A stretch of DNA of 64,000 nucleotides from Basidiobolus meristosporus CBS 931.73 (lineage: Eukaryota > Fungi > Basidiobolomycota). A model generated the notes under the pieces. It saw nothing but the letters and a program-made list of their open reading frames with translations, had not been told where the DNA came from and did no database searches. Position 1 is the stretch's first letter; each line of letters opens with the position of its first letter. The translations under genes and the position numbers were made by a program. This document shows, in pieces, positions 35,128-64,000 of this stretch. The stretch spans positions 70,046 through 134,045 of the forward strand of contig MCFE01000200.1 in NCBI GenBank assembly GCA_002104905.1. The letters are read 5' to 3'.

Positions 35128-35724
35128 CTACTAATAGCATAAAAGTACACATCGATATGTACCCACAATCTGCATTCATCATTAACATCACAGCTGCGCC
35201 TTGTACAAACTGTCATAATAATGCGATATTTCTAACGTCTTACGCAATAAAATCATGCTGAAAATCAACCTATCTGCGATGTGCCTTTAACGGACCGTTT
35301 ATAAGCTTAACAACTTCGTTGATATCCAGCTTCGAAAGATAATCGCGAAAAATGCCTTTCTTCATATTAGCTCCATTTGTCGAAATTCCTGTTTGCGTAA
35401 GTGTGTGCTCTACGGCTACACGTTGCAAACAATGATCACTTCGGTGAATGGCGGTGGATCTGACGTATTCCAATCGCCAGCCAATATTGTACTACAGGAT
35501 ATTTTGTGGGAATATCCCAGGCATGATCAAGATCGCTTATTTCTACATTTAGGGTCGGCCGTTTACGGAATGCCTGGAGTGAAACACCACCCCAAAGTTG
35601 GATGCACTCTGTCAAGTCCGACTGGAATGTAGGACATACGTGAGGAACGTCGAGGGATAAATAGCCAACGCTTCGGATGTTACCAGCAAGACATTCACTC
35701 CTGTCATTCATTCCCCCTCTCAAG

Positions 35725-40714: not shown

Positions 40715-42304
40715 ATGGTTTTCACCCTCAATAGTACCTCCGGAATTGATATCAACAAGCCGGTACTCAGGAATCTTCCTGTTTCCAAGTTGTATGAACA
40801 CGCTTTACAATATGAGAAAGGAACCTCTCTCAGTTCAGCTGGCGCCATCATCACTTCCTCTGGCAAGAAGACCGGAAGAAGCCCCAAAGACAAGCGTATT
40901 GTCGAGGAGAAGTCCACCAGTGGTGATATCTGGTGGGGCCCTGTAAACATTCCTTTGGAGGACCGCGTCTTCAGCATCAACCACGAAAGAGCTGTTGACT
41001 ACCTCAACACCCGCGAGCGTCTCTATGTTCTCGATGGATTCGCAGGTTGGGATCCCAAGTACCGCATCAAGGTCAGAGTGATCTGCGCCCGTGCCTACCA
41101 CGCTCTCTTCATGCGCAACATGCTCATCCGTCCCACTGCGGAGGAGCTCGAGAACTTTGGTGAGCCCGACTTCACCATCTTCAACGCTGGCCAGTTCCCT
41201 GCCAACCGTTACACCTCTGGCATGTCCAGCACCACCTCCGTTGCCATCAGCTTCGAGCGCAAGGAGTTCGTCATTCTCGGCACCGAGTACGCTGGTGAGA
41301 TGAAGAAGGGAGTGTTCACCATCATGCACTACCTCATGCCCAAGGCTGGAGTTCTCTCCCTTCACTCCAGCGCCAACGAAGGGCCTGATGGCGATGTGTC
41401 CTTGTTCTTCGGATTGTCTGGAACCGGCAAGACCACCTTGTCTGCTGATCCCAGCCGCTTCTTGATTGGTGATGATGAGCACTGCTGGACCGACAACGGG
41501 GTGTTCAACATCGAGGGTGGTTGCTATGCCAAGTGCATTGATCTCTCGGCTGAGAAGGAGCCCGAGATCTTCAATGCCATCCGCTTCGGCTCAGTGTTGG
41601 AGAACGTGGTGTTCGATGAGCACACCAGAGTTGTCGACTACACCGACTCATCTTTGACCGAGAACACCCGTTGTGCCTATCCCATTGAGTACATTCCCAA
41701 CGCCAAGATCCCATGCGTCGGTGGTCACCCCAAGAACATTGTCCTGCTGACCTGTGATGCATTCGGAGTGTTGCCCCCAGTGGCCAAGCTCACCTCTGCC
41801 CAAGCCATGTACCACTTCATCTCTGGATACACTGCCAAGATTGCCGGTACCGAGGAGGGAGTCACCGAGCCCCAAGCCACCTTCTCCGCCTGCTTCGGCC
41901 AGCCCTTCCTTGTCTGGCATCCAGTCAAGTATGCCTCCATGCTTGCCGAGAAGATGAAGGAGCACAACACCAACGTGTGGTTGGTGAACACCGGATGGAA
42001 CGGTGGTGCCTATGGTGTTGGCTCACGCATCTCCCTCAAGTACTCACGTGCCATCATTGATGCCATCCACAATGGAGAGCTTGCCCAAGCCGAGTTCGAG
42101 AACTACCCCATCTTCAACATTGAGATTCCCAAGAGCGTCAGCAATGTTCCTAGTGAGGTCCTGAACCCCTCTGCTGCCTGGAAGGGCACTAAGGAGTCCT
42201 ACGATGCTACTGTTGAGAAGTTGGCTAGCCTGTTCAATGAGAACTTCGAGTTGTATGCTGATCAAGCTACCGCCGAGATCGCCGCTGCTGGACCTAAAAT
42301 TTGA
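40715..42304 (+). CDS. PCK1: PEP carboxykinase (ATP), copy 5
   Basis: Same signatures; ATG at 40715 gives 1590 nt; C-terminus ...GPKI. Confidence 0.98.
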
Positions 42305-42581
42305 ATCATTAGCAACATCTAATTTGTAAATTACTGCATCATATACATCAACAATAAACCCGATTTACTCGAATCTACTCGAATCCTGAGAAATCTATCA
42401 TTGCCGATTCAAACGAATCTTCGAATTGCTTAAGTAAATCTGATTCAATGTTGTCTCCTGTGATATGGTAAATGCGATTTAACTTGGTTCCGGGTGTAGT
42501 GCGTGGATAAGACCAAGGATAACATGGGACCATGAATGTTCGTTGAAGGTTGCAAATAAGAAAATCGCTTTATTAAGGAAT

Positions 42582-43349
42582 TTATTTGTCGGCAATCTTC
42601 TTGGTACCGCGGAGAAGACCGGTACGACGGGCAGCAATAAGACCGACCTTTTGACCAGCAGAGGAGTCGCGGGCAACGGTAGAAGCATGACCGATGTGTT
42701 GGTGATTACCACCACCGTGAGGATGGTCGACGGGGTTCATGGCAACACCACGAGTCTTAGGCCAGCAGTTACGCTTAACTCTGTATTTGTGGTAAGCACG
42801 ACCAGCCTTAAGCAAGGGCTTGTCAATACGACCACCACCAGCAACGATACCAATGGTGGCACGGCAGGTAGATTGGATGACCTTCTTGGAGCCGGAAGGA
42901 AGCTTGACTCTGGTCTTACCATCATCGTGGTTGTGGGAAATGATGGTGGCGTAGTTACCGGAAGCACGGGCAATGGCACCACGGTCACCAACACTCTCTT
43001 CAATGTTACAGATGATGGTACCCTCAGGCATAGCAGAGAGGGGCAAGACGTTACCAATGGTCAAAGCAGCCTTCTTACCGCAGTAGACGAATTGTCCAGT
43101 GTACATACCCTCAGTGGCGATGAAGGTTTGGGTGTGGGTCTTGTATCTGTAGGGATCACGGAATTGGACCTTGGCGAGGGGAGCACCACGTCCAGGATCG
43201 TGAATGATCTCCTTGACGATACCACGAATGTAACCATTACGTTCAGCAAAATCAAGAGGGCGAAGTTGAGCGGCACCCTTTCTAAGGCGGGTGTGGGACT
43301 TGAAGATACCACCGGGACCCTTTCTCTGAGCACGAATGACGCGACCCAT
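42582..43349 (-). CDS. RPL2: 60S ribosomal protein uL2 (yeast L2, mammalian L8), 255 aa
   Basis: [11 protein letters not shown] start; [19 protein letters not shown] signature. Confidence 0.98.
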
Positions 43350-43826
43350 TTTATCTATGAACAAGGAGGGGTTCTGGTTAGTGTTTGGCTCTTGGAACAA
43401 TCCCCATGGAATGGATGCATGGCATTGTAGAAAGATGGATGAATTACCTTACAGAGGTCAAATGCGTTAGGTTGGAAGGAAAGAAAGATTGATTCTCTTT
43501 GCGTGGCTACTTATTTGATTCCTGGAAAATTTTACTATGAATTTTCTTGGATCTCCTCACTTATCCCGGGCAAATTTGTGGAATTTCTTTTTTGTCCTGC
43601 TGTTGTCGCTTGGATCTTAATCAAATTTTGTGCATATCGGAAAACACTGTGATTTTACATGATCTCTCGTTATTTACGATAGCGATAATTTTATTTTTGT
43701 GCACGGTTATATTTTATATTTATATTGAGTGGAGATTCGAATTTGATTGAATTATTTCGAACAAAATTTATTGATTGAAAGTGTAGATGCAGATGATGAA
43801 TATGAATTAGCTACTTCGTTATTAAT

Positions 43827-45415
43827 TTACAATTGAGGTCCAGCAGCAATAATCTCTGGTGTAGCTTGATCAGCGTACAACTTGAAGTTGTCGTTGAACA
43901 GACCAGCCAACTTCTCGACTGTGGCAACGTAGGACTCCTTGGTACCCTTCCAGGCAGCAGAGGGGTTCAGCACCTCACTGGGAACATTGCTGACACTCTT
44001 GGGAATCTCAATGTTGAAGATGGGGTAGTTCTCGAACTCGGCTTGGGCAAGCTCTCCATTGTGGATGGCATCAATGATGGCACGTGAGTACTTGAGGGAG
44101 ATGCGTGAGCCAACACCATACGCACCACCGTTCCATCCGGTGTTCACCAACCACACGTTGGTGTTGTGCTCCTTCATCTTCTCGGCAAGCATGGAGGCAT
44201 ACTTGACTGGATGCCAGACAAGGAACGGCTGGCCGAAGCAGGCGGAGAAGGTGGCTTGGGGCTCGGTGACTCCCTCCTCGGTACCGGCAATCTTGGCAGT
44301 GTATCCAGAGATGAAGTGGTACATGGCTTGGGCAGAGGTGAGCTTGGCCACTGGGGGCAACACTCCGAATGCGTCACAGGTCAACAGGACAATGTTCTTG
44401 GGGTGACCACCGACGCATGGGATCTTGGCGTTGGGAATGTACTCAATGGGATAGGCACAACGGGTGTTCTCGGTCAAAGATGAGTCGGTGTAGTCGACAA
44501 CTCTGGTGTGCTCATCGAACACCACGTTCTCCAACACTGAGCCGAAGCGGATGGCATTGAAGATCTCGGGCTCCTTCTCAGCCGAGAGATCAATGCACTT
44601 GGCATAGCAACCACCCTCGATGTTGAACACTCCGTTGTCGGTCCAGCAGTGCTCATCATCACCAATCAAGAAGCGGCTGGGATCAGCAGACAAGGTGGTC
44701 TTGCCGGTTCCAGACAATCCGAAGAACAAGGACACATCGCCATCAGGCCCTTCGTTGGCGCTGGAGTGAAGGGAGAGAACTCCAGCCTTGGGCATGAGGT
44801 AGTGCATGATGGTGAACACTCCCTTCTTCATTTCACCAGCGTACTCGGTGCCGAGAATGACGAACTCCTTGCGCTCGAAGCTGATGGCAACGGAGGTGGT
44901 GCTGGACATGCCAGAGGTGTAACGGTTGGCAGGGAACTGACCAGCATTGAAGATGGTGAAGTCGGGCTCACCAAAGTTCTCGAGCTCCTCCGCAGTGGGA
45001 CGGATGAGCATGTTGCGCATGAAGAGAGCGTGGTAGGCACGGGCGCAGATCACTCTGACCTTGATGCGGTACTTGGGATCCCAACCAGCGAATCCATCGA
45101 GAACATAGAGACGCTCGCGGGTGTTGAGGTAGTCGACCGCTCTTTCGTGGTTGATGCTGAAGACGCGGTCCTCCATAGGAATGTTCACAGGGCCCCACCA
45201 GATATCACCACTGGTGGACTTCTCCTCGACAATACGCTTGTCTTTGGGCTTCTTCCGGTCTTCTTGCCAGAGGAAGTGATGATGGCACCAGCTGAACTGA
45301 GGTAGGTACCCTTTTCGTACTGCAAAGCATGCTCATATAACTTTGCTACAGACAGATTGCGAAGAACAGGCTTATTGGTATCAATACCAGATTCGGAGTT
45401 GAGAGTGAAGGCCAT
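43827..45415 (-). pseudogene. PCK1: PEP carboxykinase (ATP), copy 6, with a 1-bp deletion (true pseudogene or sequencing error)
   Basis: 1589 nt instead of 1590; a C4 run (AGCCCCAAAGAC in copy 5) is C3 at 45246-45248; otherwise intact. Confidence 0.9.
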
Positions 45416-46516
45416 ATTGGTACTAATATGGATGTTTGAAACTGATTGTTGCTCGTTCCATGTACCAGTGCTGTCTTTTATATTGTTTGCTCAAGATGCT
45501 GTTCCTGTTAATGAATCCATTGCTTCACGGCGTGCTTCTAAACATCTTCCTATTATGATAGACCAATAGAACTCCCTTACAGCTGTGTACTGAAACCAAT
45601 ATGCCGACATATCCCGTTGTACAAATAAATCGACGAATTTGTTTATTTCGAGAATCACTCCGAAACTACCCGTGGGTTGTGAACAACCAATTTGAAGAGT
45701 CATCGAATCATCGCCTTATTGAGCAGCTTTTGAATCTTAATGCCCATTGTTTCATGGGCTTAAATTAAATGGGGTACCTGTCATCATCGTAGAACACAAA
45801 CACATCTACTCGGTTGAAATCAACTTGTGGGATCTGATTTCTAATTATAGCAGCATGATTCACATAACTTGTTTTAAGTAAGAATCCGTAACCTTTTCAT
45901 TTTGGGTCAGGGATTACCAAGGTAGAAAGAAGGTTTCAATTCGGAGATACAATTTCTATCCCATTTTGAAGTTCCTACTTATTAATCTATTATTTGGCAG
46001 ATGTCGGAATTTCAATTCACAAGCTATCGAAGCTGAGGATCTCAAAGCTGACATTAGTGCTAAGGTAGTTTCTTATGCGTTTGGTAGATCACCCATACGA
46101 TTTGACACATGCCAATTGTGGGTGCTTATCATTAAGACCGCTAGCAAGCATAATGGGCTTGGGTATGAGATTGGATGAGAAACATTTATTTGAGAGCCAT
46201 AAATGGCATTTGTTTCAAAATCTGCTTAGTAATACCTAGTAAACAACTTTTCGGTTTCTCCGGTTGGCATTGTCCGTAATAGTGGACTTTACGCACAATA
46301 GGGCTGGCGTGCAGCTATAGCTAATTTTGAAAAAGTTTTAATGTGCTTGGTGACCGTATTTATATCTCAATATTGTTTATTTTTAACAGGGTAGTGATAC
46401 AACAAATACTAATCCGAAGACAACGGAATCAAGAACCGAATAAAATGAAATATTCATGCGACCTACTGTTAGATAGTATTTGTAAGAGGGGAGTTTTCAT
46501 GCTTAGCTATGACTTT

Positions 46517-48106
46517 CTATACACGAGGGCCAGCTGCTACGATTTCAGGAGTGGCTTTGTCGGCATAGAGTTTGAAGTTATCGTTGAACAGACCAGCCAA
46601 CTTCTCGACTGTGGCAACGTAGGACTCCTTGGTACCCTTCCAGGCAGCAGAGGGGTTCAGCACCTCACTGGGAACATTGCTGACGCTCTTGGGAATCTCA
46701 ATGTTGAAGATGGGGTAGTTCTCGAACTCGGCTTGGGCAAGCTCTCCATTGTGGATGGCATCAATGATGGCACGTGAGTACTTGAGGGAGATGCGTGAGC
46801 CAACACCATAGGCACCACCGTTCCATCCGGTGTTCACCAACCACACGTTGGTGTTGTGCTCCTTCATCTTCTCGGCAAGCATGGAGGCATACTTGACTGG
46901 ATGCCAGACAAGGAACGGCTGGCCGAAGCAGGCGGAGAAGGTGGCTTGGGGCTCGGTGACTCCCTCCTCGGTACCGGCAATCTTGGCAGTGTATCCAGAG
47001 ATGAAGTGGTACATGGCTTGGGCAGAGGTGAGCTTGGCCACTGGGGGCAACACTCCGAATGCGTCACAGGTCAACAGGACAATGTTCTTGGGGTGACCAC
47101 CGACGCATGGGATCTTGGCGTTGGGAATGTACTCAATGGGATAGGCACAACGGGTGTTCTCGGTCAAAGATGAGTCGGTGTAGTCGACAACTCTGGTGTG
47201 CTCATCGAACACCACGTTCTCCAACACTGAGCCGAAGCGGATGGCATTGAAGATCTCGGGCTCCTTCTCAGCCGAGAGATCAATGCACTTGGCATAGCAA
47301 CCACCCTCGATGTTGAACACTCCGTTGTCGGTCCAGCAGTGCTCATCATCACCAATCAAGAAGCGGCTGGGATCAGCAGACAGGGTGGTCTTGCCGGTTC
47401 CAGACAACCCGAAGAACAAGGACACATCGCCATCAGGCCCTTCGTTGGCACTGGAGTGAAGAGAGAGAACTCCAGCCTTGGGCATGAGGTAGTGCATGAT
47501 GGTGAACACTCCCTTCTTCATCTCACCAGCGTACTCGGTGCCGAGAATGACGAACTCCTTGCGCTCGAAGCTGATGGCAACGGAGGTGGTGCTGGACATG
47601 CCTGAGGTGTAACGGTTGGCAGGGAACTGGCCAGCGTTGAAGATGGTGAAGTCGGGCTCACCAAAGTTCTCGAGCTCCTCCGCAGTGGGACGGATGAGCA
47701 TGTTGCGCATGAAGAGCGCGTGGTAGGCACGGGCGCAGATCACTCTGACCTTGATGCGGTACTTGGGATCCCAACCAGCGAATCCATCGAGAACATAGAG
47801 ACGCTCACGGGTGTTGAGGTAGTCAACAGCTCTTTCGTGGTTGATGCTGAAGACGCGGTCCTCCAAAGGAATGTTCACAGGGCCCCACCAGATATCACCA
47901 CTGGTGGACTTCTCCTCGACAATGCGCTTATCGCTTGGGCTTCTTCCGGTCTTCTTGCCAGAGGAAGTGATGATGGCGCCAGCTGAGCTGAGATAGGTTC
48001 CTTTTTCGTAGTTCAAAGCATTCTCGTACAGTTTTGCCACTGAAAGATTGCGAAGAACAGGCTTATTGGTATCGATGCCGTATGATTCGTTTAGTTTGAA
48101 AGCCAT
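46517..48106 (-). CDS. PCK1: PEP carboxykinase (ATP), copy 7
   Basis: Same signatures; 1590 nt; termini [10 protein letters not shown] and ...GPRV. Confidence 0.98.
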
Positions 48107-49497
48107 TGTAATAAAGCTGTAGCTGATGCTTAACAGTCATCATGGAGCAGTTCTTTTATAGCTTGTACGGACATTTACTCAGGGTACCCGGTATACTCCG
48201 ACACTTGATATATTCATCTACCATTTATAATGGTGTAACTCTGGCCAAGCAGCAATGCCTATTGCAGTATAGTCGAAATGTTCTTGCACTTCGTGGTAAG
48301 AAACCAAATATAAATGCACCCACATCATGCTAATAGCCCTCTATAGTTATGTTTTGATATTCCGCACATGGGAGTGAATTGGTACCGTTTCAGAATCCAT
48401 CCCAATGTAGAATCAGGCTAGATACGAATCACTCTTTTTAAATTCCCGGTTTCAGGGTGGAGTTGACAGAAGGCATTGGAAGGGAAGAATTCACACACAG
48501 AAGTCTAAGTGCGAGAAGATATCCGGATTGTTGATCAATGATCATCTACATCAATGGATAGCGCCGGTGGGACCAATTAGGTCACCCTACATCGGGGTGG
48601 GCACCTCAAGCACCTCTACTAGTGCCACTTGAAACCTACGCTTGAGTAGGAATGGATGAAACCACCTTCCTTTTCGGTAGAAGACACCGGTTTCTATTTA
48701 TTATAGTTTACAGTGAGTAAGCCGGTGGGGATTGAGGAGAATATGTAGCGTCTGGCGATTCCTTCGCAGTTAGGGTTGAAACGGAGCCCATAAATGGAAA
48801 TCAGGAATAGAGTTACCTTGGCCATTTCACTATTAAACCTAAGCTTCTGGACGCAGCTCACTAGCCTGAAACCTATGGATTCTATTTTAAGCTACCTCGT
48901 GAGTAATTATTCGTCTGGCGAGGTATCCCCAAGAAAAATCGCTAGATTGGGGTCAGTAAAAGCAGTACCATGTGTGATGTGATTTAAGCATCATAGCATT
49001 CTCGTCTGGTTGCGTCTGGCTAAATCATTTCGTCTTAGTATTTCATATTGCCCTGTTGAGACGCCGAATACTGATTTTCAAGTAGAGTTGTGGTGTGTCA
49101 ATGATAATGTTGCCACCGATTTATAGTGAAATCCTCGAGATTGTATTTAGAAACAAATATCAGAATTAGACTAGCAATATCTAATGTCACTTCGAGTGTT
49201 ATCAACTCATTCCTTAGCAATAATCTAAGTAGAATCTTTGATTGTATGAATGGGTTGTGTGTAAACTGAATAGTTACAGCAGCTATAAGCATATCGCAGC
49301 CATTACCTGGTCCTCAAAGGTAAAGCCTTTGTCTCCACATTAATATCCCCTGAATAATGTCCATGTAATGATGGTTGATATAATCATCCTGGTTATGGTA
49401 GTATAAGCTAGGCAGTCTTTCTTTAGACTAACAGTAACATTTACCAGAGCAAAATAGACTGTTAGAGACAGCAATTTTGAAGTTCGTAGCTTGTTAC

Positions 49498-52400
49498 TGT
49501 TGTAAGAGTCTTGGAGATATTGCAAGTGATTTGGGAGGACAAGTAGATTATGTGGTTTTCACTTAATGATTTATTGAATGTAAAAGTAGTATTTATACTT
49601 TTACATGGTCTTGGCGCAAAAACCACATAGAATAGATTTAGGAAGGTCCCAAGAACATGTGTGTCAAGTTTGGGGCTGTTTGAACAACTTTGAGATTTTT
49701 CATGTTCTGGGTACCTGATATCTTGATGAAAATATTCCAAGTAAGTCCCAATAAGGATTTTGGTCTGTATTCTCTAAGACTTGGAGGTAGTGATCTAAAT
49801 GACTAAGTTAGGTCAATATTTAGGTGGAATTCCAAATTTTTACAGCAATCAGTGTATCTTAAGCAGATATCAGCAGTTCCTTTTAGGTATCTAAAAATCT
49901 GCTTTACTGCTGCAATATGATCAGATCCATAGTTCTGATTAGGCTGGCTGACAACTACACTGAATATGAGATATCTGGACAAGTTACAAGCATGATATAC
50001 ATCAGACTGCCAACCATAGATTGATAAGGAAACTTGGGGCTTTTAGATGGCACCAAGCTGTCTTGATCTGGTTGAGTTTTGACCAAGTCAAGGTCTGTCT
50101 CCATTAGGCTAGCTGCCAGTTTATAGTCTTCCATTTGGTACTTCTTTAGTGTATCTGGAGTATACCTGCAATAGTCTGGGTACTTCTGTCTATGAAGAAC
50201 TTTACCCTTAAGTAGTAACTGAATTCTCCTAGATTGGACATCTTGAACACTTTAGAAAGGCTGGAATTAGTCTCTTCCAATGTTGCTAGGTTATTGGCAG
50301 CTATAATAAGATCATCCACATATAGAATTAATAGAATTGGATTTGCTCTATCTGGCTTATAGTGTATACTTTAGTCAGCATTATTTCTTTTAAAACTCAA
50401 AGATTCCAAATAAGAATTCATTTTGCAATTTCAGGCTCTTGGTCACTGTTAGAGTCCATATAGAGATTTTTTAAGCTTGCAGACCAAATGGGGATTATCT
50501 TGGTTAATAGACCCATCAGACTGGTCCATATATATATCCTCATCAAGTTCACTCAAAATGCAGCTTTTACATCCAATTGGTGTATAGAAAACTTATATTT
50601 GGCTGCAATAGCTAATATCAATCTGATGGAATTAAACTTGGCTACTGGTGCAAAGGTCTCAGTATAGTCAAGCCCTTTTGTTTGAAAGTATTCTTTGGCC
50701 ACAAGTCTTGCTGTGTATCCTTCAATTGCACCATCAGCCTTATACTTTGTCTTAAAGACCCATCAGCATCCAATTGATTTTTGGTTGGTTGGTAACCTTG
50801 CTTAGTCCAAAATTTGATTTTCCATTAGGGCCTGATATTTGTCAGTTATTGCAGATCTCCAAAACTTTGTCTGAGGGCTATTGAGGGCCTCTTTTACAGT
50901 CTGGGGCTCATCAATATGGACTCAATAGGCATAGGCTAGGTTTGTACCCTCATTGATATAGTAATTTGGGCTATTTCTGGTCTGGTTGGATCTTCTGGCA
51001 TTTGACACTGGAATGATCACCTCTGGTATATTCCTGGGCACTGATTCAGGCTGAGCTACGGTTGCAGAGTCTATTGGAGTGAAAAAATATCATTGTTTTG
51101 CTCTGATTCAATCCCAACAATTGGTGGACTTGAGATCAGATTTTTGTCATCATCTGATGTCATTTTTTGTGAAAATTTTGAGTTTTCATCACACAACAAA
51201 TTGCTGGACTTGATCAGCTTCTTTGCTTTGCTATTGTAGAGTTTATACGCTTTACTCTCATTGCAGTAGCCCAAAAATATGCATTTTACACTTTTTGACT
51301 AAATTTTGACCAATTTCCATACAGTTTCTTGGCATATGTTGTACACCCAAATATTGTTAGATGTTCTGCACTTGGTCTGCATCCATAACATGCTTCAAAT
51401 GGAGTAGAATCACATAGTATTCTGTTATAACTCCTATTTTTAAGGTATACAGTGGTAGCAACTGATTCCACCCAAAAATCATAGGATATTTTTTGATCAT
51501 GGATCATAGATCTTGCCATGTCAATTATTGATCTGTTTGCACATTCTGCTACTCCATTTTGCTGTGGGGAGTATGGTACAGTAGTCTCTTGCTTGATCCC
51601 ATAAATTTGCAAAAGTGGCTGAAGAGTTTTGAGGTATAGTCTCCACCATTGACAGATCATATTTTCTTGATTTTTCTCCAGTTTCCCTCTCCACCATGAC
51701 TTTAAGCTCCCTGGATTTAGACAGAGCTTGTTCCTTTCTCTTCATGAAGCAGACCAACATAACATCATCCTGCCTAAGGATAAATTTTGTATATGTCCAC
51801 ACAGATATGAGTGAAATAGATCTAATTTTTTCTTAGTCTTGATTGACCCAGAGCTCATGAATAGCTGTTAGGCTTGTTTATCATATATGCAGGCTTCACA
51901 GTGCTCCATATTAGCTGGGGGAGCAACTTCTACTCCAGAAATCAGCTGATCTTTGATCAATTTGCTCAAATAATCCAAATTGATGTGTCCAAATCTCCTG
52001 TGCCAAAGCATTGATGTTTTTTCATTCAAGTTACTTATATTGGCTTCCAGATATGATGGAATATGAGTTAACTTGTACAGATTCTTATCTCTGATACCCA
52101 AAGCAATAGGAGCACCATTTTTTTCAGTGATGCTGCATCCAGAATTGTCAAAGCTGAAACTGAGTCCTTCTGCTGTGGCCTTGCTTAAAGATAGTAGGTT
52201 CTGAGCTATTTCTGATACATAGAGTACTTCTTCAAAGGTCAGTGTATGGCTTCCTTCACTGCTTCTAAGGCTTACTTCGATAATTCCTTCCCCCACTGCA
52301 TCAAGTGTTCTATTGTCACCCATGAAAACCTTCTTAATTGGAGTTTCTTGATATTGAGTAAGAAGTTCTTTTTGGTGTGTAAAGTGTTGAGATGCTCCAG

Positions 52401-53622
52401 AGTCAATATACTACATCTGAGAGTCCTTGTTTGTGGTCATATTTAGTGCAGTTATGAATAGTTGATTTTCAGTTGTTGCAGCATTTCCATATTCAGCCTT
52501 TTTCTGCTGACCATCTCTCTTATTAAGACACCAGTCTGATGTGTGTCCTTTCCTTTGGCAGTAGTGGCAAAGCAGGTTTCTATTGCCTTTGAAAGGTCTT
52601 GGGTATCTCCTTTGTTGGTTATCATTGCTTATTAAAGTATTTTTTACTTTCTTCTTATTGGCACTTGATTTTCTTAATTCTTCATCCAGGAACCTTCCAT
52701 ATACATAATTTAAGGTCAAATCTTCAGTTCTGGACTCTAGGGCTGATACAAGGCCCTGAGACTTGTCTGTCAGGCTATTCAGGATGGTTACTATCACATC
52801 CTCATCAGTAGTTGGTGTGCACACAGATTCCATCTCATCCACCTGCAGGGTAATTCTGTTAATTAGATTTTCATTTCTTCTCCAGGCAGCATCTTTGTAG
52901 TAAAGAATTTCTGTCTAAGATACTTTTTCTTGGCCACTGAACATGACAGGTAGGTGTCTTCTAATGTCTTCCAGGCATTCTTTGCCATTTTTGCTCTTGA
53001 GCTTTGAATTGGCAATTTGTCCTTAACATTAAGGCAAATGCAGTTAAAGGCACTTTGTTCTTTCTTCTGGTACTTTAAGGATTCCCCTGCCACACTTTTA
53101 GGAGGACATTCTTCTCCCATGATAGTATCCCAAAGGCCTCTTTCTTGTAGCAGCATCTTCATCTTCACCTTCCATAGTTGGTAGTTAGATCCATTGAACT
53201 TTTCAGCAGAGGGAAAAAATTCAGGTAATAGCAGTAATAGACATTGCAGAGAGTGACAACTTGGGGCTCATCACCTGCTGTAAGAGCCTTGGGGATATTG
53301 GAAGTGATTGGGAGAACAAGTGAACTATGTGGTTTTCACTTAATGATTTATTGAATGCAAAGTAGTATTTATACTTTTGCATGGTCTTGGCATAAGAAAC
53401 ACATAGAGTAGGTTTAGGAAGGTCCCAAGAACATGTGTACAAAGTGTGGGGCTATTTGGACAACTTACCAAATTTTCATGCTTTGGGTACCTGATATCTT
53501 GGTTAAATATTCAAGGTAAATCCCATGAAGGAATTTGGTCAGTATCCTCTAGGATTTGAAGGTAACGATCTAGATGACTAAATTAGGCAAATATTTAGGT
53601 TGAATTTTAAACTTTTACAACA
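49498..53622 (-). mobile_element. Degenerate Ty1/copia retrotransposon, same family
   Basis: LTRs 49498-49847 and 53276-53622; 5-bp TSD GTTAC on both sides; fragmented gag-pol; RNaseH end deleted. Confidence 0.92.
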
Positions 53623-54182
53623 GTTACAAGATTCTAGGGTGTATTAGAAGTGACCTTGAGAAGTAGAATTGAATGACATTCACTTTTGGTTTTATTGAGT
53701 AGCTAACCAGTATTTGTACTTGTAGGGGGAGTTTGTAAGACTGGTGATCAGAGAGCTTTAAGAAGATCCCAGTAATCTGTGTATAAAGTCTGAGGGCTTC
53801 AGTGCATGTCTCTCTCACTCTAAAATCTATGAATATGGATCCTGTTTGATTTGATAGCATAAAACAACAAGTGCTAACATGTGCATGAAAAATGCACACA
53901 CAAGGTACATTTGCTATCTACTGATTTTCATGATGAGTAGAATGGATTGATTGATGGAGAGCAGCTTGATGTACGTCATCAGCCAAGATTAGCTGCTGCC
54001 AATACTTATAGGTTTTCTAAGAGACTTGGAGCGGTGGGCCTTCATCCTATATCACATTGCTCAGGATGCGGCATTTGTTCTCTCTCCCTACTAGCCCATT
54101 CTTGCACAAATCTGATTAGACACTTATTGGTGATTTCGAGCAAGATGGAAACTTCAAATTATTACCTTATTTATAAACAATC

Positions 54183-54264
54183 GACACTTTGGCGGAGTGG
54201 TTAACGCGGTGCCCTGCTAAGGCATTTCCCTATGGGAGCGCAGGTTCGAATCCTGCAGGTGTCG
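54183..54264 (+). tRNA. tRNA-Ser(GCT), unit 1
   Basis: Cloverleaf; GTGCC-CT-GCT-AA-GGCAT arm; long variable arm; GTTCGAATC. Confidence 0.95.
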
Positions 54265-54441
54265 GTATTTAAATTTTGATTAAAAGTTTTGAAAGCGCGG
54301 AGTGACCAAGTCACTTCCTGACATTAAAAGTCTTGAATAGGGGAACCAACAGTCCGAGTGTCTTGGGTGTCAATTGTTGCTGACAAACATGGTAAAGTCA
54401 AGAGTTGAACACCCAAAAGAACGACCGATTCATTAAGCAAA

Positions 54442-54512
54442 GCATACTTGGTTTAGTGGTATAATTACCGCCTGCCACGCGGTAGACCGGGGTTCGATTC
54501 CCCGAGTATGCA
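54442..54512 (+). tRNA. tRNA-Gly(GCC), unit 1
   Basis: ACCGC-CT-GCC-AC-GCGGT arm; GGTTCGATTCC. Confidence 0.95.
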
Positions 54513-55252
54513 ATTTTGTTTGCTGAAGATAGTTTCTTGTCTTTTTGGGTGGTGAATGGAGGGCTAGGGTCAGGGTTAGGGTTAAATAGTCCCCCCTGAG
54601 GAATCACTAATATCAGTAGTCGCCGCAAATGAGGTGAAATCAACCGAACGCTTCGAAAAGATCTTGTTCCAATTTGAAAACTAGGCGTAGGATAACTGTT
54701 CAAGCATGTTTCTTGTATCTGTAGCCGAGTTGCCAACCACGTCAACCACGCCTATATAAACAGATTCCCTTTCGAGGAGATTGCCCTGACCCAGCTATTA
54801 CTATTACAGACCGGTGGTTGTAAAAGTAATTACCTTGGTGTAATAACAGTACAGTGTACAAATTCGCTGTAAGGTCATTTTTAGCATTTACTAGGCCATG
54901 TCATACTCTACATACAAACCAGGTGAAGAACTGCTGGTAGGGGAGGATCCTCTCACTCTAAAATCAATGAATAAGGATTCTGTTCGGTTCTATAGTATGA
55001 TACAACCAGTGCTAACACGTACTGGAAAGATGCATATGCAAGGTAGATTAGCTATCTACTGATTTCCATGATGAGTAGAATGGATTGATTTGATCGGTGA
55101 AATAATTATTGATCACGTTGAACAGAATTCGAAAATTTCGGTCGGATGATCTACGGATTGGCCAGTCAATTCATCAGTGAAAGAAAAAAATATAAAGACC
55201 GGAGTAAAAGATATGGAAGAATGCAGCACGCATCTGTAAAAAGAGTATATTA

Positions 55253-55325
55253 CACCCAACGTGGGGGTCGAACCCACAACCTTGAGATTAAGAGTCTCAC
55301 GCTCTACCGATTGAGCTAGCCGGGC
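55253..55325 (-). tRNA. tRNA-Lys(CTT), unit 1
   Basis: GCCCGGCTAGCTCAATCGG...TGAGA-CT-CTT-AA-TCTCA. Confidence 0.95.
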
Positions 55326-55631
55326 ACTTGATATCCTGAGTATGGACAGCAAAGTAATGTTGTTTTCCCCACTGCTTTGTACACCATGTTGATGGTAACA
55401 GTGTTAAGAAGATTTAGTATTTGGCACTCAATATAAAGCGGTGGAAAGAAAAATGGCGTAATATATACATGTAAATGTATATATAAGCATATACAGCGGC
55501 ACGAGTTCAACACACATCCACAATGGTGTCCGGGGATTACTCCACCCAGGGTAATGTACTAGTTTGAGTAAATTATGGCCCAATAATGCCCCGATATTAT
55601 CCTCCGCCATGGTAGCTGAAAGAAGTAAAAA

Positions 55632-55704
55632 TGCTCCCTGCCAGGATCGAACTGGCGACCTTCAGATTATGAGACTAACGCGCTGCCAACTGCGCTAAGG
55701 AAGC
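55632..55704 (-). tRNA. tRNA-Met(CAT) elongator, unit 1
   Basis: GCTTCC...TTAGT-CT-CAT-AA-TCTGA with U31:U39; GTTCGA T-loop. Confidence 0.95.
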
Positions 55705-56029
55705 ATTTACAAACACAAGCGTGATAGCAATGTAATTGGAAGTATGTTGAGATATCACGGAGATTAGTATACATGCACGCACACAACAAGTGTACTCATT
55801 CCAAGTAAATCCCATCATGGCATTGCTTTTCATAGTATGCTGCTCTGATCCACACAAAGGCAGACAGAGAGGTATTTGTGAGACCCTTAGGCCTCCAAAT
55901 AAGAAGGCTTGATATGCAAATACCTTGAATGTCCACCTCCTTTCTCAAAATATCGGTGAGGATTTTGCTACAACATCTCATCTACATAAACCAGGTGAAT
56001 AGGCTTAAGTAGGCATGCTAAAAGTAATG

Positions 56030-56101
56030 TTCCCCATCGGGGAATCGAACCCCGGCCGTCTCGGTGAGAGCGAGAAATCCTAACCACTGGACCAATGAGG
56101 A
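56030..56101 (-). tRNA. tRNA-Glu(CTC), unit 1
   Basis: TCCTCATTGGTCCAGTGG...TCTCG-CT-CTC-AC-CGAGA. Confidence 0.95.
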
Positions 56102-56855
56102 GAATATATGAATTTTGTATTGATATTTGTATTGAACATATTAAACTCTTTCATATGCAATATCTCAAAATGCAAGGCATAAACCTGAATCTAACTCTGG
56201 AATATAAGAACATCCCTCAAGGGAATGATAAACACTATCATATTGAAGTATTTGGTGTGCAAGCAGGTTACGTAGAATATCCTATCCAACCAACAAAGCT
56301 AAGGTAAACTGATTCGTACACAGAAAAGTACTAACTAGTGATTTGTACGACTGCAGGGCTAGCGTAGTGGGATCTCTCGAGTTTGGTTGCAATTGGGGAT
56401 CGATGTTCGATCCTTAGGGAGCCATTCCCCAGCTTATGTTGTATTGAATATGCACAATGGAGTGATGCTGAACTTTTGCATCTTTTATCTGGCCACTTTC
56501 GGTCGTTGTGAAATTAAAATAGCATCTGCATTTTCCAGCAACCCTAAACCTAAAGCATATGCCAACACACCTCCCCGTCAGGATGTCCTCATTTCTTTGG
56601 CAAGTGCAGATCAACTAAGGAAATTAATCCGAGCTTACTTGAGATTCAAGGGGACCATTGCTTAGACCAGAGGAAATGCTGCGTAAATTCGCAATGACGA
56701 GCACTAAAGTGAGAGCAAGCAAGCTACACCGAAGATACAATGAGAAGGCTAGCTGAAGCCATACAAATACATATCAAAAGGGATTCTAGAACTGTAGGGA
56801 AAGAACGCAGAGAGCACGGTCCATATGAATTTTGCAATGCAAAATAAACAAAAGA

Positions 56856-56927
56856 TAGCAGCGAGAGGTTTCGATCCTCCGACCTCGGGGTTATGAGCCC
56901 CGCGCGCTTCCTCTGCGCTACGCTGCT
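56856..56927 (-). tRNA. tRNA-iMet(CAT) initiator, unit 1
   Basis: A1-U72 pair; consecutive G-C pairs in the anticodon stem; GGATCGAAAC T-loop (A54). Confidence 0.95.
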
Positions 56928-57144
56928 TTTCTATTTGTACGACATAGTAACATAATTTATACTAATTATAACAAGCAACAAACGATCAATGGGTTAAGAC
57001 CGTATCAAAGCGGTGGCGATTCGAAGAGGTCTTGTGTGTGAAAACGAAGAACCAACCGATTAGAAAATCGGTTTCTAACAAGAAGTGCAAGTCTCTTTGG
57101 AAAAGCCAGATTTGTTGCTGGAAGCAGGGCCACTTCACGTATTA

Positions 57145-57226
57145 GACGATATGGCCGAGTGGTTAAGGCGTATGACTAGAAATCATATGGGCTCTGCCCG
57201 CGCAGGTTCAAATCCTGCTGTCGTCG
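57145..57226 (+). tRNA. tRNA-Ser(AGA), unit 1
   Basis: TATGA-CT-AGA-AA-TCATA arm; long variable arm. Confidence 0.95.
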
Positions 57227-57231
57227 AGTTT

Positions 57232-57305
57232 GCTCGCATAGCTCAGTTGGTTAGAGCGTGGTGCTAATAACGCCAAGGTCGCAGGTTCGACCCCTGCTGT
57301 GAGCA
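57232..57305 (+). tRNA. tRNA-Ile(AAT), unit 1
   Basis: TGGTG-CT-AAT-AA-CGCCA arm; followed by a T6 terminator. Confidence 0.95.
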
Positions 57306-57643
57306 AGTTTTTTCTTTTATCACCTCCATCAATTTAATGAACAAAACCCCATCCGAAATAACTTAGGATCCACCTACATGCTAGTAGAGCTTAGAGCATC
57401 CCGGTGCCATGGAGAACAAATATTCATGGAAATATAGATGTATGAAAATCTGGATAAAATCTGTTGTTGACTACTTTGCATTAGAATATATGATAGATGG
57501 ACTGCTTTGTCTTTATATTGCGAATACGAAATAATCCAACCCAATCTAGACTGGTATTGGCCAGAAGAGAGATATTGCGGTAGAAATCCTTTTGATGACG
57601 GGTCACCCTAGATTCCCTATAAGCCCGTAGAAAAAGAGAGTAA

Positions 57644-57716
57644 CGCCCAAAGGGGGGCTCGAACCCCCGACCCTAAGATTAAAAGTCTCATGCTCTACCG
57701 ACTGAGCTATTCGGGC
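57644..57716 (-). tRNA. tRNA-Lys(TTT), unit 1
   Basis: GCCCGAATAGCTCAGTCGG...TGAGA-CT-TTT-AA-TCTTA. Confidence 0.95.
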
Positions 57717-58189
57717 TAGTCGGCTAGCATCACTAATGATTTGAACTTAACCCCAACAATCTCAGTCTCTACTTTCACTTTCCTTAGTAATGCGTAGCGA
57801 GGAAAATTGGATAGCATAAACGAAAAGTTCTACCTAAGCTCTTCTAGAGTTGGAGTTATGAGTAGGGTTAGGGTAGGTTCGGCAATAAGCATACCGGCAA
57901 CATCTACCAAAGTTAGGTTTAGCCTAGTATATATCATATTTTGTTCTGAAAAGCACTCCGATGGAGAGCAGCTTGATGTACGTCATCAGCCAAGATTAGC
58001 TGCTGCCAATACTTATAGGTTTTCTAAGAGACTTGGAGCGGTGGGCCTTCATCCTATATCACATTGCTCAGGATGCGGCATTTGTTCTCTCTCCCTACTA
58101 GCCCATTCTTGCACAAATCTGATTAGACACTTATTGGTGATTTCGAGCAAGATGGAAACTTCAAATTATTACCTTATTTATAAACAATC

Positions 58190-58271
58190 GACACTTTGGC
58201 GGAGTGGTTAACGCGGTGCCCTGCTAAGGCATTTCCCTATGGGAGCGCAGGTTCGAATCCTGCAGGTGTCG
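58190..58271 (+). tRNA. tRNA-Ser(GCT), unit 2
   Basis: Copy at +4007. Confidence 0.95.
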
Positions 58272-58448
58272 GTATTTAAATTTTGATTAAAAGTTTTGAA
58301 AGCGCGGAGTGACCAAGTCACTTCCTGACATTAAAAGTCTTGAATAGGGGAACCAACAGTCCGAGTGTCTTGGGTGTCAATTGTTGCTGACAAACATGGT
58401 AAAGTCAAGAGTTGAACACCCAAAAGAACGACCGATTCATTAAGCAAA

Positions 58449-58519
58449 GCATACTTGGTTTAGTGGTATAATTACCGCCTGCCACGCGGTAGACCGGGGT
58501 TCGATTCCCCGAGTATGCA
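58449..58519 (+). tRNA. tRNA-Gly(GCC), unit 2
   Basis: Copy at +4007. Confidence 0.95.
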
Positions 58520-59259
58520 ATTTTGTTTGCTGAAGATAGTTTCTTGTCTTTTTGGGTGGTGAATGGAGGGCTAGGGTCAGGGTTAGGGTTAAATAGTCCC
58601 CCCTGAGGAATCACTAATATCAGTAGTCGCCGCAAATGAGGTGAAATCAACCGAACGCTTCGAAAAGATCTTGTTCCAATTTGAAAACTAGGCGTAGGAT
58701 AACTGTTCAAGCATGTTTCTTGTATCTGTAGCCGAGTTGCCAACCACGTCAACCACGCCTATATAAACAGATTCCCTTTCGAGGAGATTGCCCTGACCCA
58801 GCTATTACTATTACAGACCGGTGGTTGTAAAAGTAATTACCTTGGTGTAATAACAGTACAGTGTACAAATTCGCTGTAAGGTCATTTTTAGCATTTACTA
58901 GGCCATGTCATACTCTACATACAAACCAGGTGAAGAACTGCTGGTAGGGGAGGATCCTCTCACTCTAAAATCAATGAATAAGGATTCTGTTCGGTTCTAT
59001 AGTATGATACAACCAGTGCTAACACGTACTGGAAAGATGCATATGCAAGGTAGATTAGCTATCTACTGATTTCCATGATGAGTAGAATGGATTGATTTGA
59101 TCGGTGAAATAATTATTGATCACGTTGAACAGAATTCGAAAATTTCGGTCGGATGATCTACGGATTGGCCAGTCAATTCATCAGTGAAAGAAAAAAATAT
59201 AAAGACCGGAGTAAAAGATATGGAAGAATGCAGCACGCATCTGTAAAAAGAGTATATTA

Positions 59260-59332
59260 CACCCAACGTGGGGGTCGAACCCACAACCTTGAGATTAAGA
59301 GTCTCACGCTCTACCGATTGAGCTAGCCGGGC
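59260..59332 (-). tRNA. tRNA-Lys(CTT), unit 2
   Basis: Copy at +4007. Confidence 0.95.
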
Positions 59333-59638
59333 ACTTGATATCCTGAGTATGGACAGCAAAGTAATGTTGTTTTCCCCACTGCTTTGTACACCATGTTGAT
59401 GGTAACAGTGTTAAGAAGATTTAGTATTTGGCACTCAATATAAAGCGGTGGAAAGAAAAATGGCGTAATATATACATGTAAATGTATATATAAGCATATA
59501 CAGCGGCACGAGTTCAACACACATCCACAATGGTGTCCGGGGATTACTCCACCCAGGGTAATGTACTAGTTTGAGTAAATTATGGCCCAATAATGCCCCG
59601 ATATTATCCTCCGCCATGGTAGCTGAAAGAAGTAAAAA

Positions 59639-59711
59639 TGCTCCCTGCCAGGATCGAACTGGCGACCTTCAGATTATGAGACTAACGCGCTGCCAACTGC
59701 GCTAAGGAAGC
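59639..59711 (-). tRNA. tRNA-Met(CAT) elongator, unit 2
   Basis: Copy at +4007. Confidence 0.95.
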
Positions 59712-60036
59712 ATTTACAAACACAAGCGTGATAGCAATGTAATTGGAAGTATGTTGAGATATCACGGAGATTAGTATACATGCACGCACACAACAAGTGT
59801 ACTCATTCCAAGTAAATCCCATCATGGCATTGCTTTTCATAGTATGCTGCTCTGATCCACACAAAGGCAGACAGAGAGGTATTTGTGAGACCCTTAGGCC
59901 TCCAAATAAGAAGGCTTGATATGCAAATACCTTGAATGTCCACCTCCTTTCTCAAAATATCGGTGAGGATTTTGCTACAACATCTCATCTACATAAACCA
60001 GGTGAATAGGCTTAAGTAGGCATGCTAAAAGTAATG

Positions 60037-60108
60037 TTCCCCATCGGGGAATCGAACCCCGGCCGTCTCGGTGAGAGCGAGAAATCCTAACCACTGGACC
60101 AATGAGGA
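60037..60108 (-). tRNA. tRNA-Glu(CTC), unit 2
   Basis: Copy at +4007. Confidence 0.95.
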
Positions 60109-60862
60109 GAATATATGAATTTTGTATTGATATTTGTATTGAACATATTAAACTCTTTCATATGCAATATCTCAAAATGCAAGGCATAAACCTGAATCTA
60201 ACTCTGGAATATAAGAACATCCCTCAAGGGAATGATAAACACTATCATATTGAAGTATTTGGTGTGCAAGCAGGTTACGTAGAATATCCTATCCAACCAA
60301 CAAAGCTAAGGTAAACTGATTCGTACACAGAAAAGTACTAACTAGTGATTTGTACGACTGCAGGGCTAGCGTAGTGGGATCTCTCGAGTTTGGTTGCAAT
60401 TGGGGATCGATGTTCGATCCTTAGGGAGCCATTCCCCAGCTTATGTTGTATTGAATATGCACAATGGAGTGATGCTGAACTTTTGCATCTTTTATCTGGC
60501 CACTTTCGGTCGTTGTGAAATTAAAATAGCATCTGCATTTTCCAGCAACCCTAAACCTAAAGCATATGCCAACACACCTCCCCGTCAGGATGTCCTCATT
60601 TCTTTGGCAAGTGCAGATCAACTAAGGAAATTAATCCGAGCTTACTTGAGATTCAAGGGGACCATTGCTTAGACCAGAGGAAATGCTGCGTAAATTCGCA
60701 ATGACGAGCACTAAAGTGAGAGCAAGCAAGCTACACCGAAGATACAATGAGAAGGCTAGCTGAAGCCATACAAATACATATCAAAAGGGATTCTAGAACT
60801 GTAGGGAAAGAACGCAGAGAGCACGGTCCATATGAATTTTGCAATGCAAAATAAACAAAAGA

Positions 60863-60934
60863 TAGCAGCGAGAGGTTTCGATCCTCCGACCTCGGGGTTA
60901 TGAGCCCCGCGCGCTTCCTCTGCGCTACGCTGCT
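60863..60934 (-). tRNA. tRNA-iMet(CAT), unit 2
   Basis: Copy at +4007. Confidence 0.95.
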
Positions 60935-61151
60935 TTTCTATTTGTACGACATAGTAACATAATTTATACTAATTATAACAAGCAACAAACGATCAATGGG
61001 TTAAGACCGTATCAAAGCGGTGGCGATTCGAAGAGGTCTTGTGTGTGAAAACGAAGAACCAACCGATTAGAAAATCGGTTTCTAACAAGAAGTGCAAGTC
61101 TCTTTGGAAAAGCCAGATTTGTTGCTGGAAGCAGGGCCACTTCACGTATTA

Positions 61152-61233
61152 GACGATATGGCCGAGTGGTTAAGGCGTATGACTAGAAATCATATGGGCT
61201 CTGCCCGCGCAGGTTCAAATCCTGCTGTCGTCG
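61152..61233 (+). tRNA. tRNA-Ser(AGA), unit 2
   Basis: Copy at +4007. Confidence 0.95.
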
Positions 61234-61238
61234 AGTTT

Positions 61239-61312
61239 GCTCGCATAGCTCAGTTGGTTAGAGCGTGGTGCTAATAACGCCAAGGTCGCAGGTTCGACCC
61301 CTGCTGTGAGCA
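61239..61312 (+). tRNA. tRNA-Ile(AAT), unit 2
   Basis: Copy at +4007. Confidence 0.95.
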
Positions 61313-61650
61313 AGTTTTTTCTTTTATCACCTCCATCAATTTAATGAACAAAACCCCATCCGAAATAACTTAGGATCCACCTACATGCTAGTAGAGCTTA
61401 GAGCATCCCGGTGCCATGGAGAACAAATATTCATGGAAATATAGATGTATGAAAATCTGGATAAAATCTGTTGTTGACTACTTTGCATTAGAATATATGA
61501 TAGATGGACTGCTTTGTCTTTATATTGCGAATACGAAATAATCCAACCCAATCTAGACTGGTATTGGCCAGAAGAGAGATATTGCGGTAGAAATCCTTTT
61601 GATGACGGGTCACCCTAGATTCCCTATAAGCCCGTAGAAAAAGAGAGTAA

Positions 61651-61723
61651 CGCCCAAAGGGGGGCTCGAACCCCCGACCCTAAGATTAAAAGTCTCATGC
61701 TCTACCGACTGAGCTATTCGGGC
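61651..61723 (-). tRNA. tRNA-Lys(TTT), unit 2
   Basis: Copy at +4007. Confidence 0.95.
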
Positions 61724-62196
61724 TAGTCGGCTAGCATCACTAATGATTTGAACTTAACCCCAACAATCTCAGTCTCTACTTTCACTTTCCTTAGTAATGC
61801 GTAGCGAGGAAAATTGGATAGCATAAACGAAAAGTTCTACCTAAGCTCTTCTAGAGTTGGAGTTATGAGTAGGGTTAGGGTAGGTTCGGCAATAAGCATA
61901 CCGGCAACATCTACCAAAGTTAGGTTTAGCCTAGTATATATCATATTTTGTTCTGAAAAGCACTCCGATGGAGAGCAGCTTGATGTACGTCATCAGCCAA
62001 GATTAGCTGCTGCCAATACTTATAGGTTTTCTAAGAGACTTGGAGCGGTGGGCCTTCATCCTATATCACATTGCTCAGGATGCGGCATTTGTTCTCTCTC
62101 CCTACTAGCCCATTCTTGCACAAATCTGATTAGACACTTATTGGTGATTTCGAGCAAGATGGAAACTTCAAATTATTACCTTATTTATAAACAATC

Positions 62197-62278
62197 GACA
62201 CTTTGGCGGAGTGGTTAACGCGGTGCCCTGCTAAGGCATTTCCCTATGGGAGCGCAGGTTCGAATCCTGCAGGTGTCG
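62197..62278 (+). tRNA. tRNA-Ser(GCT), unit 3
   Basis: Copy at +8014. Confidence 0.95.
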
Positions 62279-62455
62279 GTATTTAAATTTTGATTAAAAG
62301 TTTTGAAAGCGCGGAGTGACCAAGTCACTTCCTGACATTAAAAGTCTTGAATAGGGGAACCAACAGTCCGAGTGTCTTGGGTGTCAATTGTTGCTGACAA
62401 ACATGGTAAAGTCAAGAGTTGAACACCCAAAAGAACGACCGATTCATTAAGCAAA

Positions 62456-62526
62456 GCATACTTGGTTTAGTGGTATAATTACCGCCTGCCACGCGGTAGA
62501 CCGGGGTTCGATTCCCCGAGTATGCA
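62456..62526 (+). tRNA. tRNA-Gly(GCC), unit 3
   Basis: Copy at +8014. Confidence 0.95.
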
Positions 62527-63266
62527 ATTTTGTTTGCTGAAGATAGTTTCTTGTCTTTTTGGGTGGTGAATGGAGGGCTAGGGTCAGGGTTAGGGTTAAA
62601 TAGTCCCCCCTGAGGAATCACTAATATCAGTAGTCGCCGCAAATGAGGTGAAATCAACCGAACGCTTCGAAAAGATCTTGTTCCAATTTGAAAACTAGGC
62701 GTAGGATAACTGTTCAAGCATGTTTCTTGTATCTGTAGCCGAGTTGCCAACCACGTCAACCACGCCTATATAAACAGATTCCCTTTCGAGGAGATTGCCC
62801 TGACCCAGCTATTACTATTACAGACCGGTGGTTGTAAAAGTAATTACCTTGGTGTAATAACAGTACAGTGTACAAATTCGCTGTAAGGTCATTTTTAGCA
62901 TTTACTAGGCCATGTCATACTCTACATACAAACCAGGTGAAGAACTGCTGGTAGGGGAGGATCCTCTCACTCTAAAATCAATGAATAAGGATTCTGTTCG
63001 GTTCTATAGTATGATACAACCAGTGCTAACACGTACTGGAAAGATGCATATGCAAGGTAGATTAGCTATCTACTGATTTCCATGATGAGTAGAATGGATT
63101 GATTTGATCGGTGAAATAATTATTGATCACGTTGAACAGAATTCGAAAATTTCGGTCGGATGATCTACGGATTGGCCAGTCAATTCATCAGTGAAAGAAA
63201 AAAATATAAAGACCGGAGTAAAAGATATGGAAGAATGCAGCACGCATCTGTAAAAAGAGTATATTA

Positions 63267-63339
63267 CACCCAACGTGGGGGTCGAACCCACAACCTTGAG
63301 ATTAAGAGTCTCACGCTCTACCGATTGAGCTAGCCGGGC
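63267..63339 (-). tRNA. tRNA-Lys(CTT), unit 3
   Basis: Copy at +8014. Confidence 0.95.
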
Positions 63340-63645
63340 ACTTGATATCCTGAGTATGGACAGCAAAGTAATGTTGTTTTCCCCACTGCTTTGTACACCA
63401 TGTTGATGGTAACAGTGTTAAGAAGATTTAGTATTTGGCACTCAATATAAAGCGGTGGAAAGAAAAATGGCGTAATATATACATGTAAATGTATATATAA
63501 GCATATACAGCGGCACGAGTTCAACACACATCCACAATGGTGTCCGGGGATTACTCCACCCAGGGTAATGTACTAGTTTGAGTAAATTATGGCCCAATAA
63601 TGCCCCGATATTATCCTCCGCCATGGTAGCTGAAAGAAGTAAAAA

Positions 63646-63718
63646 TGCTCCCTGCCAGGATCGAACTGGCGACCTTCAGATTATGAGACTAACGCGCTGC
63701 CAACTGCGCTAAGGAAGC
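63646..63718 (-). tRNA. tRNA-Met(CAT) elongator, unit 3
   Basis: Copy at +8014. Confidence 0.95.
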
Positions 63719-64000
63719 ATTTACAAACACAAGCGTGATAGCAATGTAATTGGAAGTATGTTGAGATATCACGGAGATTAGTATACATGCACGCACACAA
63801 CAAGTGTACTCATTCCAAGTAAATCCCATCATGGCATTGCTTTTCATAGTATGCTGCTCTGATCCACACAAAGGCAGACAGAGAGGTATTTGTGAGACCC
63901 TTAGGCCTCCAAATAAGAAGGCTTGATATGCAAATACCTTGAATGTCCACCTCCTTTCTCAAAATATCGGTGAGGATTTTGCTACAACATCTCATCTACA

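Follow-up and report, generated by a model that had tools for sequence, protein, structure and literature searches.

Transfer RNA (tRNA) genes arranged in tandem repeats of multi-gene units, in the manner of ribosomal DNA (rDNA), have been described in several eukaryotes. In the telomere-to-telomere assembly of Schizosaccharomyces japonicus, a 5.6-kb unit with 18 tRNA and three 5S genes is present 34 times, and there are also 3-kb repeated units of six tRNA genes. Tandem multi-tRNA units are located at the centromeres, and one chromosome end bears a tRNA array of 575 kb; earlier assemblies had collapsed these regions or were broken there (Etherington et al. 2024, PMC7619369). In Entamoeba, almost all tRNA genes reside in arrays that make up more than 10% of the genome. 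These consist of near-identical tandem units with up to five tRNA genes, microsatellite-like short tandem repeats between the genes and sometimes 5S RNA; concerted evolution has been invoked for them and a telomeric role proposed (Tawari et al. 2008, PMC2652664). Two further descriptions concern a 3.18-kb tandem repeat with 8 tRNA genes in Xenopus laevis (Muller, Clarkson and Galas 1987, cited in PMC1635290) and, at human 1q23.3, a multi-kb tRNA-gene tandem repeat of variable copy number that was proposed to be a boundary element (PMC4041453). Here we describe a further example of the layout known from S. japonicus, Entamoeba and Xenopus, a tandem array of a 4007-bp unit with nine tRNA genes in the fungus Basidiobolus meristosporus CBS 931.73, where it forms the end of contig MCFE01000200.1. 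The analysed stretch of 64,000 nucleotides (contig positions 70,046 to 134,045, forward strand) is referred to as the window.

Self-comparison of the window at a period of 4007 bp yielded 100% identity from position 53953 to the window end at 64000, with neighbouring periods at approximately 26%. Position 53952 is the last mismatch at this period, and the 6041 compared positions contain no mismatch and no indel. The array comprises 2.51 units, arranged head to tail, and the assembled sequence runs without a break from the unique left flank through two complete junctions between units (57959/57960 and 61966/61967). These results agree with an initial annotation of this DNA, which had placed a 4007-bp tandem array with nine tRNAs per unit from position 53953 onwards and had described the units as apparently identical including their spacers. 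The same annotation had the array continuing past the window. It does run to the window end, but position 64000 is also the final base of the contig (134045 bp; assembly GCA_002104905.1), and 2.5 units are what the assembly contains. Over window positions 36517–58106 the contig record agrees with the window at every base, as its reverse complement. When a contig stops inside a perfect repeat, the repeat usually exceeds the length resolvable with the reads, and the array probably has more than the 2.5 units assembled.

Within the window, ARAGORN identified 22 tRNA genes, all of them between 54182 and 63719 and none elsewhere. The set of nine tRNAs recurs in register at +4007 and +8014 on the same strands as in the first unit (Table 1), in agreement with the annotated gene content. 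Every gene matched the Rfam tRNA model over its full length with scores of 59.5–69.8 bits, compared with a gathering score of 29. As read from the sequence, all nine genes possess canonical A and B boxes and CCA is not encoded. No intron was called by ARAGORN in any of the nine genes, which had likewise been annotated as intronless. Each transcription unit is followed by a run of at least four T within 20 nt downstream. The Met gene at 56856–56927 on the minus strand bears the marks of eukaryotic initiators: A1:U72 is present, the anticodon stem has three G-C pairs, and the T-loop contains GATCGAAA. The tRNA genes occupy 16.8% of the unit, which has a GC content of 42%, and ordinary spacers between them measure 177–754 bp.

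The single shorter gap, of 5 nt, separates tRNA-Ser(AGA) from tRNA-Ile(AAT). This spacer reads AGTTT, there is no four-T run after the Ser gene, and TTTTTT occurs only after the Ile gene. The sequence suggests that both tRNAs probably form a dimeric, co-transcribed gene. Dimeric tRNA genes are known from yeasts, Ser-Met in S. pombe and Arg-Asp in S. cerevisiae, with a gap of a few nucleotides and a single terminator after the second gene. The Ser-Ile pair of Basidiobolus shares the short gap and the one terminator after the second gene, while the partner tRNA differs. Counted in this way, the 4007-bp unit carries nine tRNAs in eight transcription units, namely the probable Ser-Ile dimer and seven genes that stand alone.

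Table 1. Features of the array and its surroundings. Positions are those of the window; copies are given as distances from the listed gene; CpG o/e, CpG observed/expected.
Feature	Position	Strand	CpG o/e	Remarks
Unit 1	53953–57959			tandem array, complete
Unit 2	57960–61966			tandem array, complete
Unit 3	61967–64000			partial, ends at contig end
tRNA-Ser(GCT), 82 nt	54183–54264	+		copies +4007, +8014; TTTT run 10 nt downstream
tRNA-Gly(GCC)	54442–54512	+		copies +4007, +8014; TTTT directly downstream
tRNA-Lys(CTT)	55253–55325	-		copies +4007, +8014; TTTTT downstream
Elongator tRNA-Met(CAT)	55632–55704	-		copies +4007, +8014; ordinary TTCGA T-loop, TTTTT directly downstream
tRNA-Glu(CTC)	56030–56101	-		copy +4007; ARAGORN and Rfam
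Initiator tRNA-Met(CAT)	56856–56927	-		copy +4007; A1:U72, GGG/CCC anticodon stem, GATCGAAA T-loop
tRNA-Ser(AGA)/tRNA-Ile(AAT), probably dimeric gene	57145–57305	+		copy +4007 (61152–61312)
tRNA-Lys(TTT)	57644–57716	-		copy +4007; ARAGORN and Rfam
tRNA genes of the array			0.98	
Spacers of the array			0.64	
Element E1, 141 nt	53812–53952	+		left flank; ends on the last base before the array
Element E2, 141 nt	54950–55090	+		inside the unit at offset 998–1138; 84% identical to E1
330 bp between copia element and array			0.00	
Decayed Ty1/copia retrotransposon	49497–53622	-	0.03	gag, integrase and reverse-transcriptase remnants; 351-bp long terminal repeats 84% alike
Last gene of the PEPCK cluster	46517–48106	-		
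PEPCK cluster region	31300–48106		0.74	
AT-rich part of the window	1–22000		0.08	
TTAGGG-like degenerate tracts in three spacers per unit	54564–54581; 56542–56553 (-); 57862–57873			and their repeats in the array
AT-rich near-palindrome, 24 nt	55461–55484			spacer between Lys(CTT) and elongator Met
RPL2/L8e gene	42582–43349	-		intronless

Of the properties of tandem multi-tRNA arrays, a unit with different tRNA genes repeated head to tail, near-identity of the units, spacers included, and intact RNA polymerase III signals were found at this locus. Arrays of this type comprise tens to hundreds of units, of which 2.5 are seen here before the contig ends. A close described counterpart is that of S. 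japonicus, also a fungus, in which the head-to-tail units measure roughly 3 to 5.6 kb, with 6 to 18 different tRNA genes in each, and the arrays adjoin long terminal repeat (LTR) retrotransposons, as here. However, S. japonicus belongs to the Ascomycota and Basidiobolus to the Zoopagomycota, and the gene sets differ. Three 5S rDNA genes and simple repeats are found in some of the S. japonicus units and are both absent from that of Basidiobolus: in Rfam searches of the unit only tRNA matched, both at the gathering score and at E values up to 1, so that it is not of the 5S-linked type, and Tandem Repeats Finder detected no microsatellites or short tandem repeats between 45000 and 64000. Moreover, the chromosomal positions of the S. 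japonicus arrays, at centromeres and one chromosome end, have been mapped; the Basidiobolus array is known from one flank only.

The nearly identical tandem units with several different tRNA genes are also shared with Entamoeba; unlike there, the unit holds nine genes and is free of 5S and of the interspersed microsatellites typical of Entamoeba in the region searched. In Xenopus laevis, the repeat includes an initiator Met gene and its copy number, established by hybridisation, is in the hundreds. The Xenopus repeat resembles that of Basidiobolus in a unit of approximately 3–4 kb with 8–9 different tRNA genes on both strands; it belongs to a vertebrate, and the Basidiobolus array can be counted only to the 2.5 assembled units. 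The human repeat shares the tandem multi-kb unit with tRNA genes, but this unit is 7.3 kb long, GC-rich and bound by CTCF, compared with 42% GC in Basidiobolus. Fungi are not known to possess CTCF. We found no report on tRNA arrays in Basidiobolus or other Zoopagomycota in the literature, and in a 2025 preprint on 19 new Basidiobolus genomes the word tRNA does not occur.

The spacers of the unit contain no additional B-box-like sites. Degenerate TTAGGG-like tracts of 12–20 nt are present in three of them; outside tRNA genes there are 3 such tracts per 4-kb unit compared with 4 in the other 54 kb, and the whole window contains 16 matches compared with 4.1 in shuffled sequences. In another spacer, a 24-nt near-palindrome (22 of 24 bases) accounts for an opposite-strand self-match of the unit.

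We regard it as likely that the locus is a genuine chromosomal tandem array for RNA polymerase III, kept uniform by recombination and multiplying the dose of major tRNAs. In this scenario, amplification of the 4007-bp unit would have proceeded, as in rDNA, through gene conversion or unequal crossing-over among units, and the same exchange would keep the array uniform; concerted evolution of the units is a possible reading of their identity. The array would raise the gene dose of Lys-CTT, Glu-CTC, Ile-AAT, Ser-AGA, Ser-GCT, Gly-GCC and both Met tRNAs, provided that the genes are expressed, and the minor Lys-TTT would be carried along with these major tRNA genes. An assembler unable to cross the array would then stop inside it, leaving the contig end where it is.

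Codons were counted in five PEPCK open reading frames (ORFs) and the RPL2 gene of the neighbouring cluster. AAG, GAG and ATC plus ATT make up 93%, 88% and 99% of their respective codon sets, TCC plus TCT 56%, AGC plus AGT 30% and GGT plus GGC 69%. Six of the nine array tRNAs read preferred codons, so the counts support the annotated correspondence between anticodons and the codons favoured in the PEPCK and RPL2 genes. Taken together, a homogeneous array, functional-looking genes and the match to preferred codons make a dosage array kept by recombination a sensible reading. The initial annotation had likewise proposed a tRNA-dosage array, and the homogeneous multi-tRNA array, the intact genes and the codon match on which it drew all hold. 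Its suggestion that such an array was potentially undescribed in fungi does not, as homogeneous multi-tRNA arrays had already been published for S. japonicus (PMC7619369).

Several observations weigh against this interpretation. Lys-TTT reads a codon that is used at only 7%. In most eukaryotes the major isoacceptors would likewise match preferred codons, so this match is not specific to the array. The assembly of strain CBS 931.73 was built from PacBio reads (PMC7466969); consensus polishing of long reads can erase small or low-level differences between units, and the perfect identity of the units may owe something to it. Only 2.5 units are assembled, in one assembly of one strain. Finally, no independent copy of the unit was recovered: a 134-aa ORF across the unit junction had no match in a word-index protein search, exact look-ups of two other spacer ORFs gave no match, and metagenome scans with the Ser-Ile dimer junction and the unit-to-unit junction yielded 0 matches each, in protein and metagenome sources none of which is known to sample other Basidiobolus DNA at the array locus. 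The 90% cluster of the flanking PEPCK had a single member and provided no orthologous locus; the RPL2 cluster had a member from B. ranarum, but only on a 3.6-kb contig.

The left flank of the array provides a contrast in CpG content. From left to right, the last gene of the PEPCK cluster is followed by a 1.4-kb upstream region, the decayed copia element, 330 bp of further sequence and the array, which thereby lies 5.8 kb from an ordinary gene cluster. A second repeat pair with a spacing of 3776 bp, considered as another tRNA unit, was rejected, as it corresponds to the LTRs of the dead copia element. The switch from CpG-dead to CpG-keeping DNA falls exactly at the array edge (Table 1). The array, with values close to that of the genic PEPCK region, has kept its CpGs next to a copia element and 330 bp that are CpG-dead; therefore, it escaped the decay that hit its neighbour. 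Either the process that destroys CpGs in the repeats of this genome has been kept away from the array, or not enough time has passed since the array was amplified or homogenised.

Recent origin is also the core of the first alternative, a neutral segmental amplification in which fork-stalling tRNA genes promoted unequal exchange, without selection on dose and with decay still ahead. The lack of any divergence speaks for a very recent event. Yet all nine genes and their terminators are intact and the CpGs are retained, and 2.5 identical copies cannot separate neutrality from selection. We consider a purely neutral amplification rather unlikely.

A second alternative is a primarily structural array, which marks or builds a chromatin boundary, a subtelomeric domain or one that flanks a centromere, and supplies tRNAs only secondarily; the initial annotation had also named a structural role as possible. 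Arrays of S. japonicus fill centromeres and one chromosome end, and a telomeric role has been proposed for those of Entamoeba. At the Basidiobolus locus, CpG-dead DNA gives way exactly where the array starts, the array adjoins transposon-rich DNA, and each unit contains three TTAGGG-like tracts outside the tRNA genes compared with four in the remaining 54 kb. These tracts are, however, short and degenerate, a recent amplification or homogenisation explains the sharp CpG boundary equally well, and the far side of the array is unassembled while the near side is only a short distance from an ordinary gene cluster. A mainly structural role appears improbable to us.

An assembly artefact, in which the long-read assembler repeated one unit or a short duplication where the contig end was ragged, would account for the complete lack of differences even in spacers and for the position of the array at the very end of the contig. 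Against this stand the two complete junctions in continuity with unique flanking sequence. Such junctions have to be present in reads for an overlap assembler to write them, assemblers of this kind are more prone to collapsing repeats than to inventing them, and a contig that stops within a repeat points to more copies, not fewer. An artefact is accordingly very unlikely.

Two copies of a 141-nt element, E, occur at the locus. Both have sharp ends, and the sequences on either side are unrelated. E1 lacks both CpGs that E2 retains, while the other 20 differences between them are of mixed types; E1 is the older copy. No further copy was found in the window or in 83 kb of other loci. The left flank was also considered as a site of older units in decay, which was rejected, as nothing but the 141 nt matches and the surroundings are unrelated. 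Three simple models for the position of E1 at the array edge did not fit the order of the segments: a decayed older unit, a circular unit that integrated via E, and unequal exchange involving the two E copies. The coincidence between the end of E1 and the start of the array is explained by none of the array-origin models considered. It would suit a unit that is or was a tRNA-carrying transposon with E as its end, an origin that is extremely improbable given that the unit has no terminal inverted repeats, that the three unit ORFs tested contain no transposase or other Pfam domain, that the units abut directly without target duplication, and that E2 lies inside the unit instead of at its ends and E is not repeated elsewhere in the DNA searched.

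Some observations concern the RPL2/L8e gene, which is located inside the PEPCK gene cluster. An identical RPL2 protein of 255 aa is encoded on five contigs of the assembly. Two of the four other RPL2 loci have the same neighbours, encoding LSM, ATP synthase subunit h, a TPR protein and PI4-kinase, suggesting either uncollapsed haplotypes or the duplication of large segments. The neighbours at the four other loci differ from those at the array locus, and neither tRNA genes nor similarity to the unit were found there, in a sample too small to judge dispersed tRNA genes.

With B. meristosporus, a second fungal lineage, very distant from S. japonicus, has an rDNA-like organisation of tRNA genes; the probable Ser-Ile dimeric gene and the sharp CpG boundary are the details new here. 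The distribution of these arrays suggests that the layout arises repeatedly in eukaryotes and is under-reported, as assemblies break or collapse at them. For the Basidiobolus reference assembly this means that tRNA gene counts and contig ends are unreliable at such arrays. The CpG contrast at the array edge provides a concrete site at which to ask whether spreading DNA methylation is held back by tRNA arrays. A wider arrangement is conceivable, although we put it forward only tentatively: most nuclear tRNA genes of Basidiobolus might reside in a few homogenised multi-tRNA arrays, as CpG-preserved and presumably unmethylated islands that end methylated, transposon-rich domains, perhaps by centromeres or chromosome ends. 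If true, this would be a genome-wide tRNA layout like that of Entamoeba, evolved independently in an early-diverging fungus.

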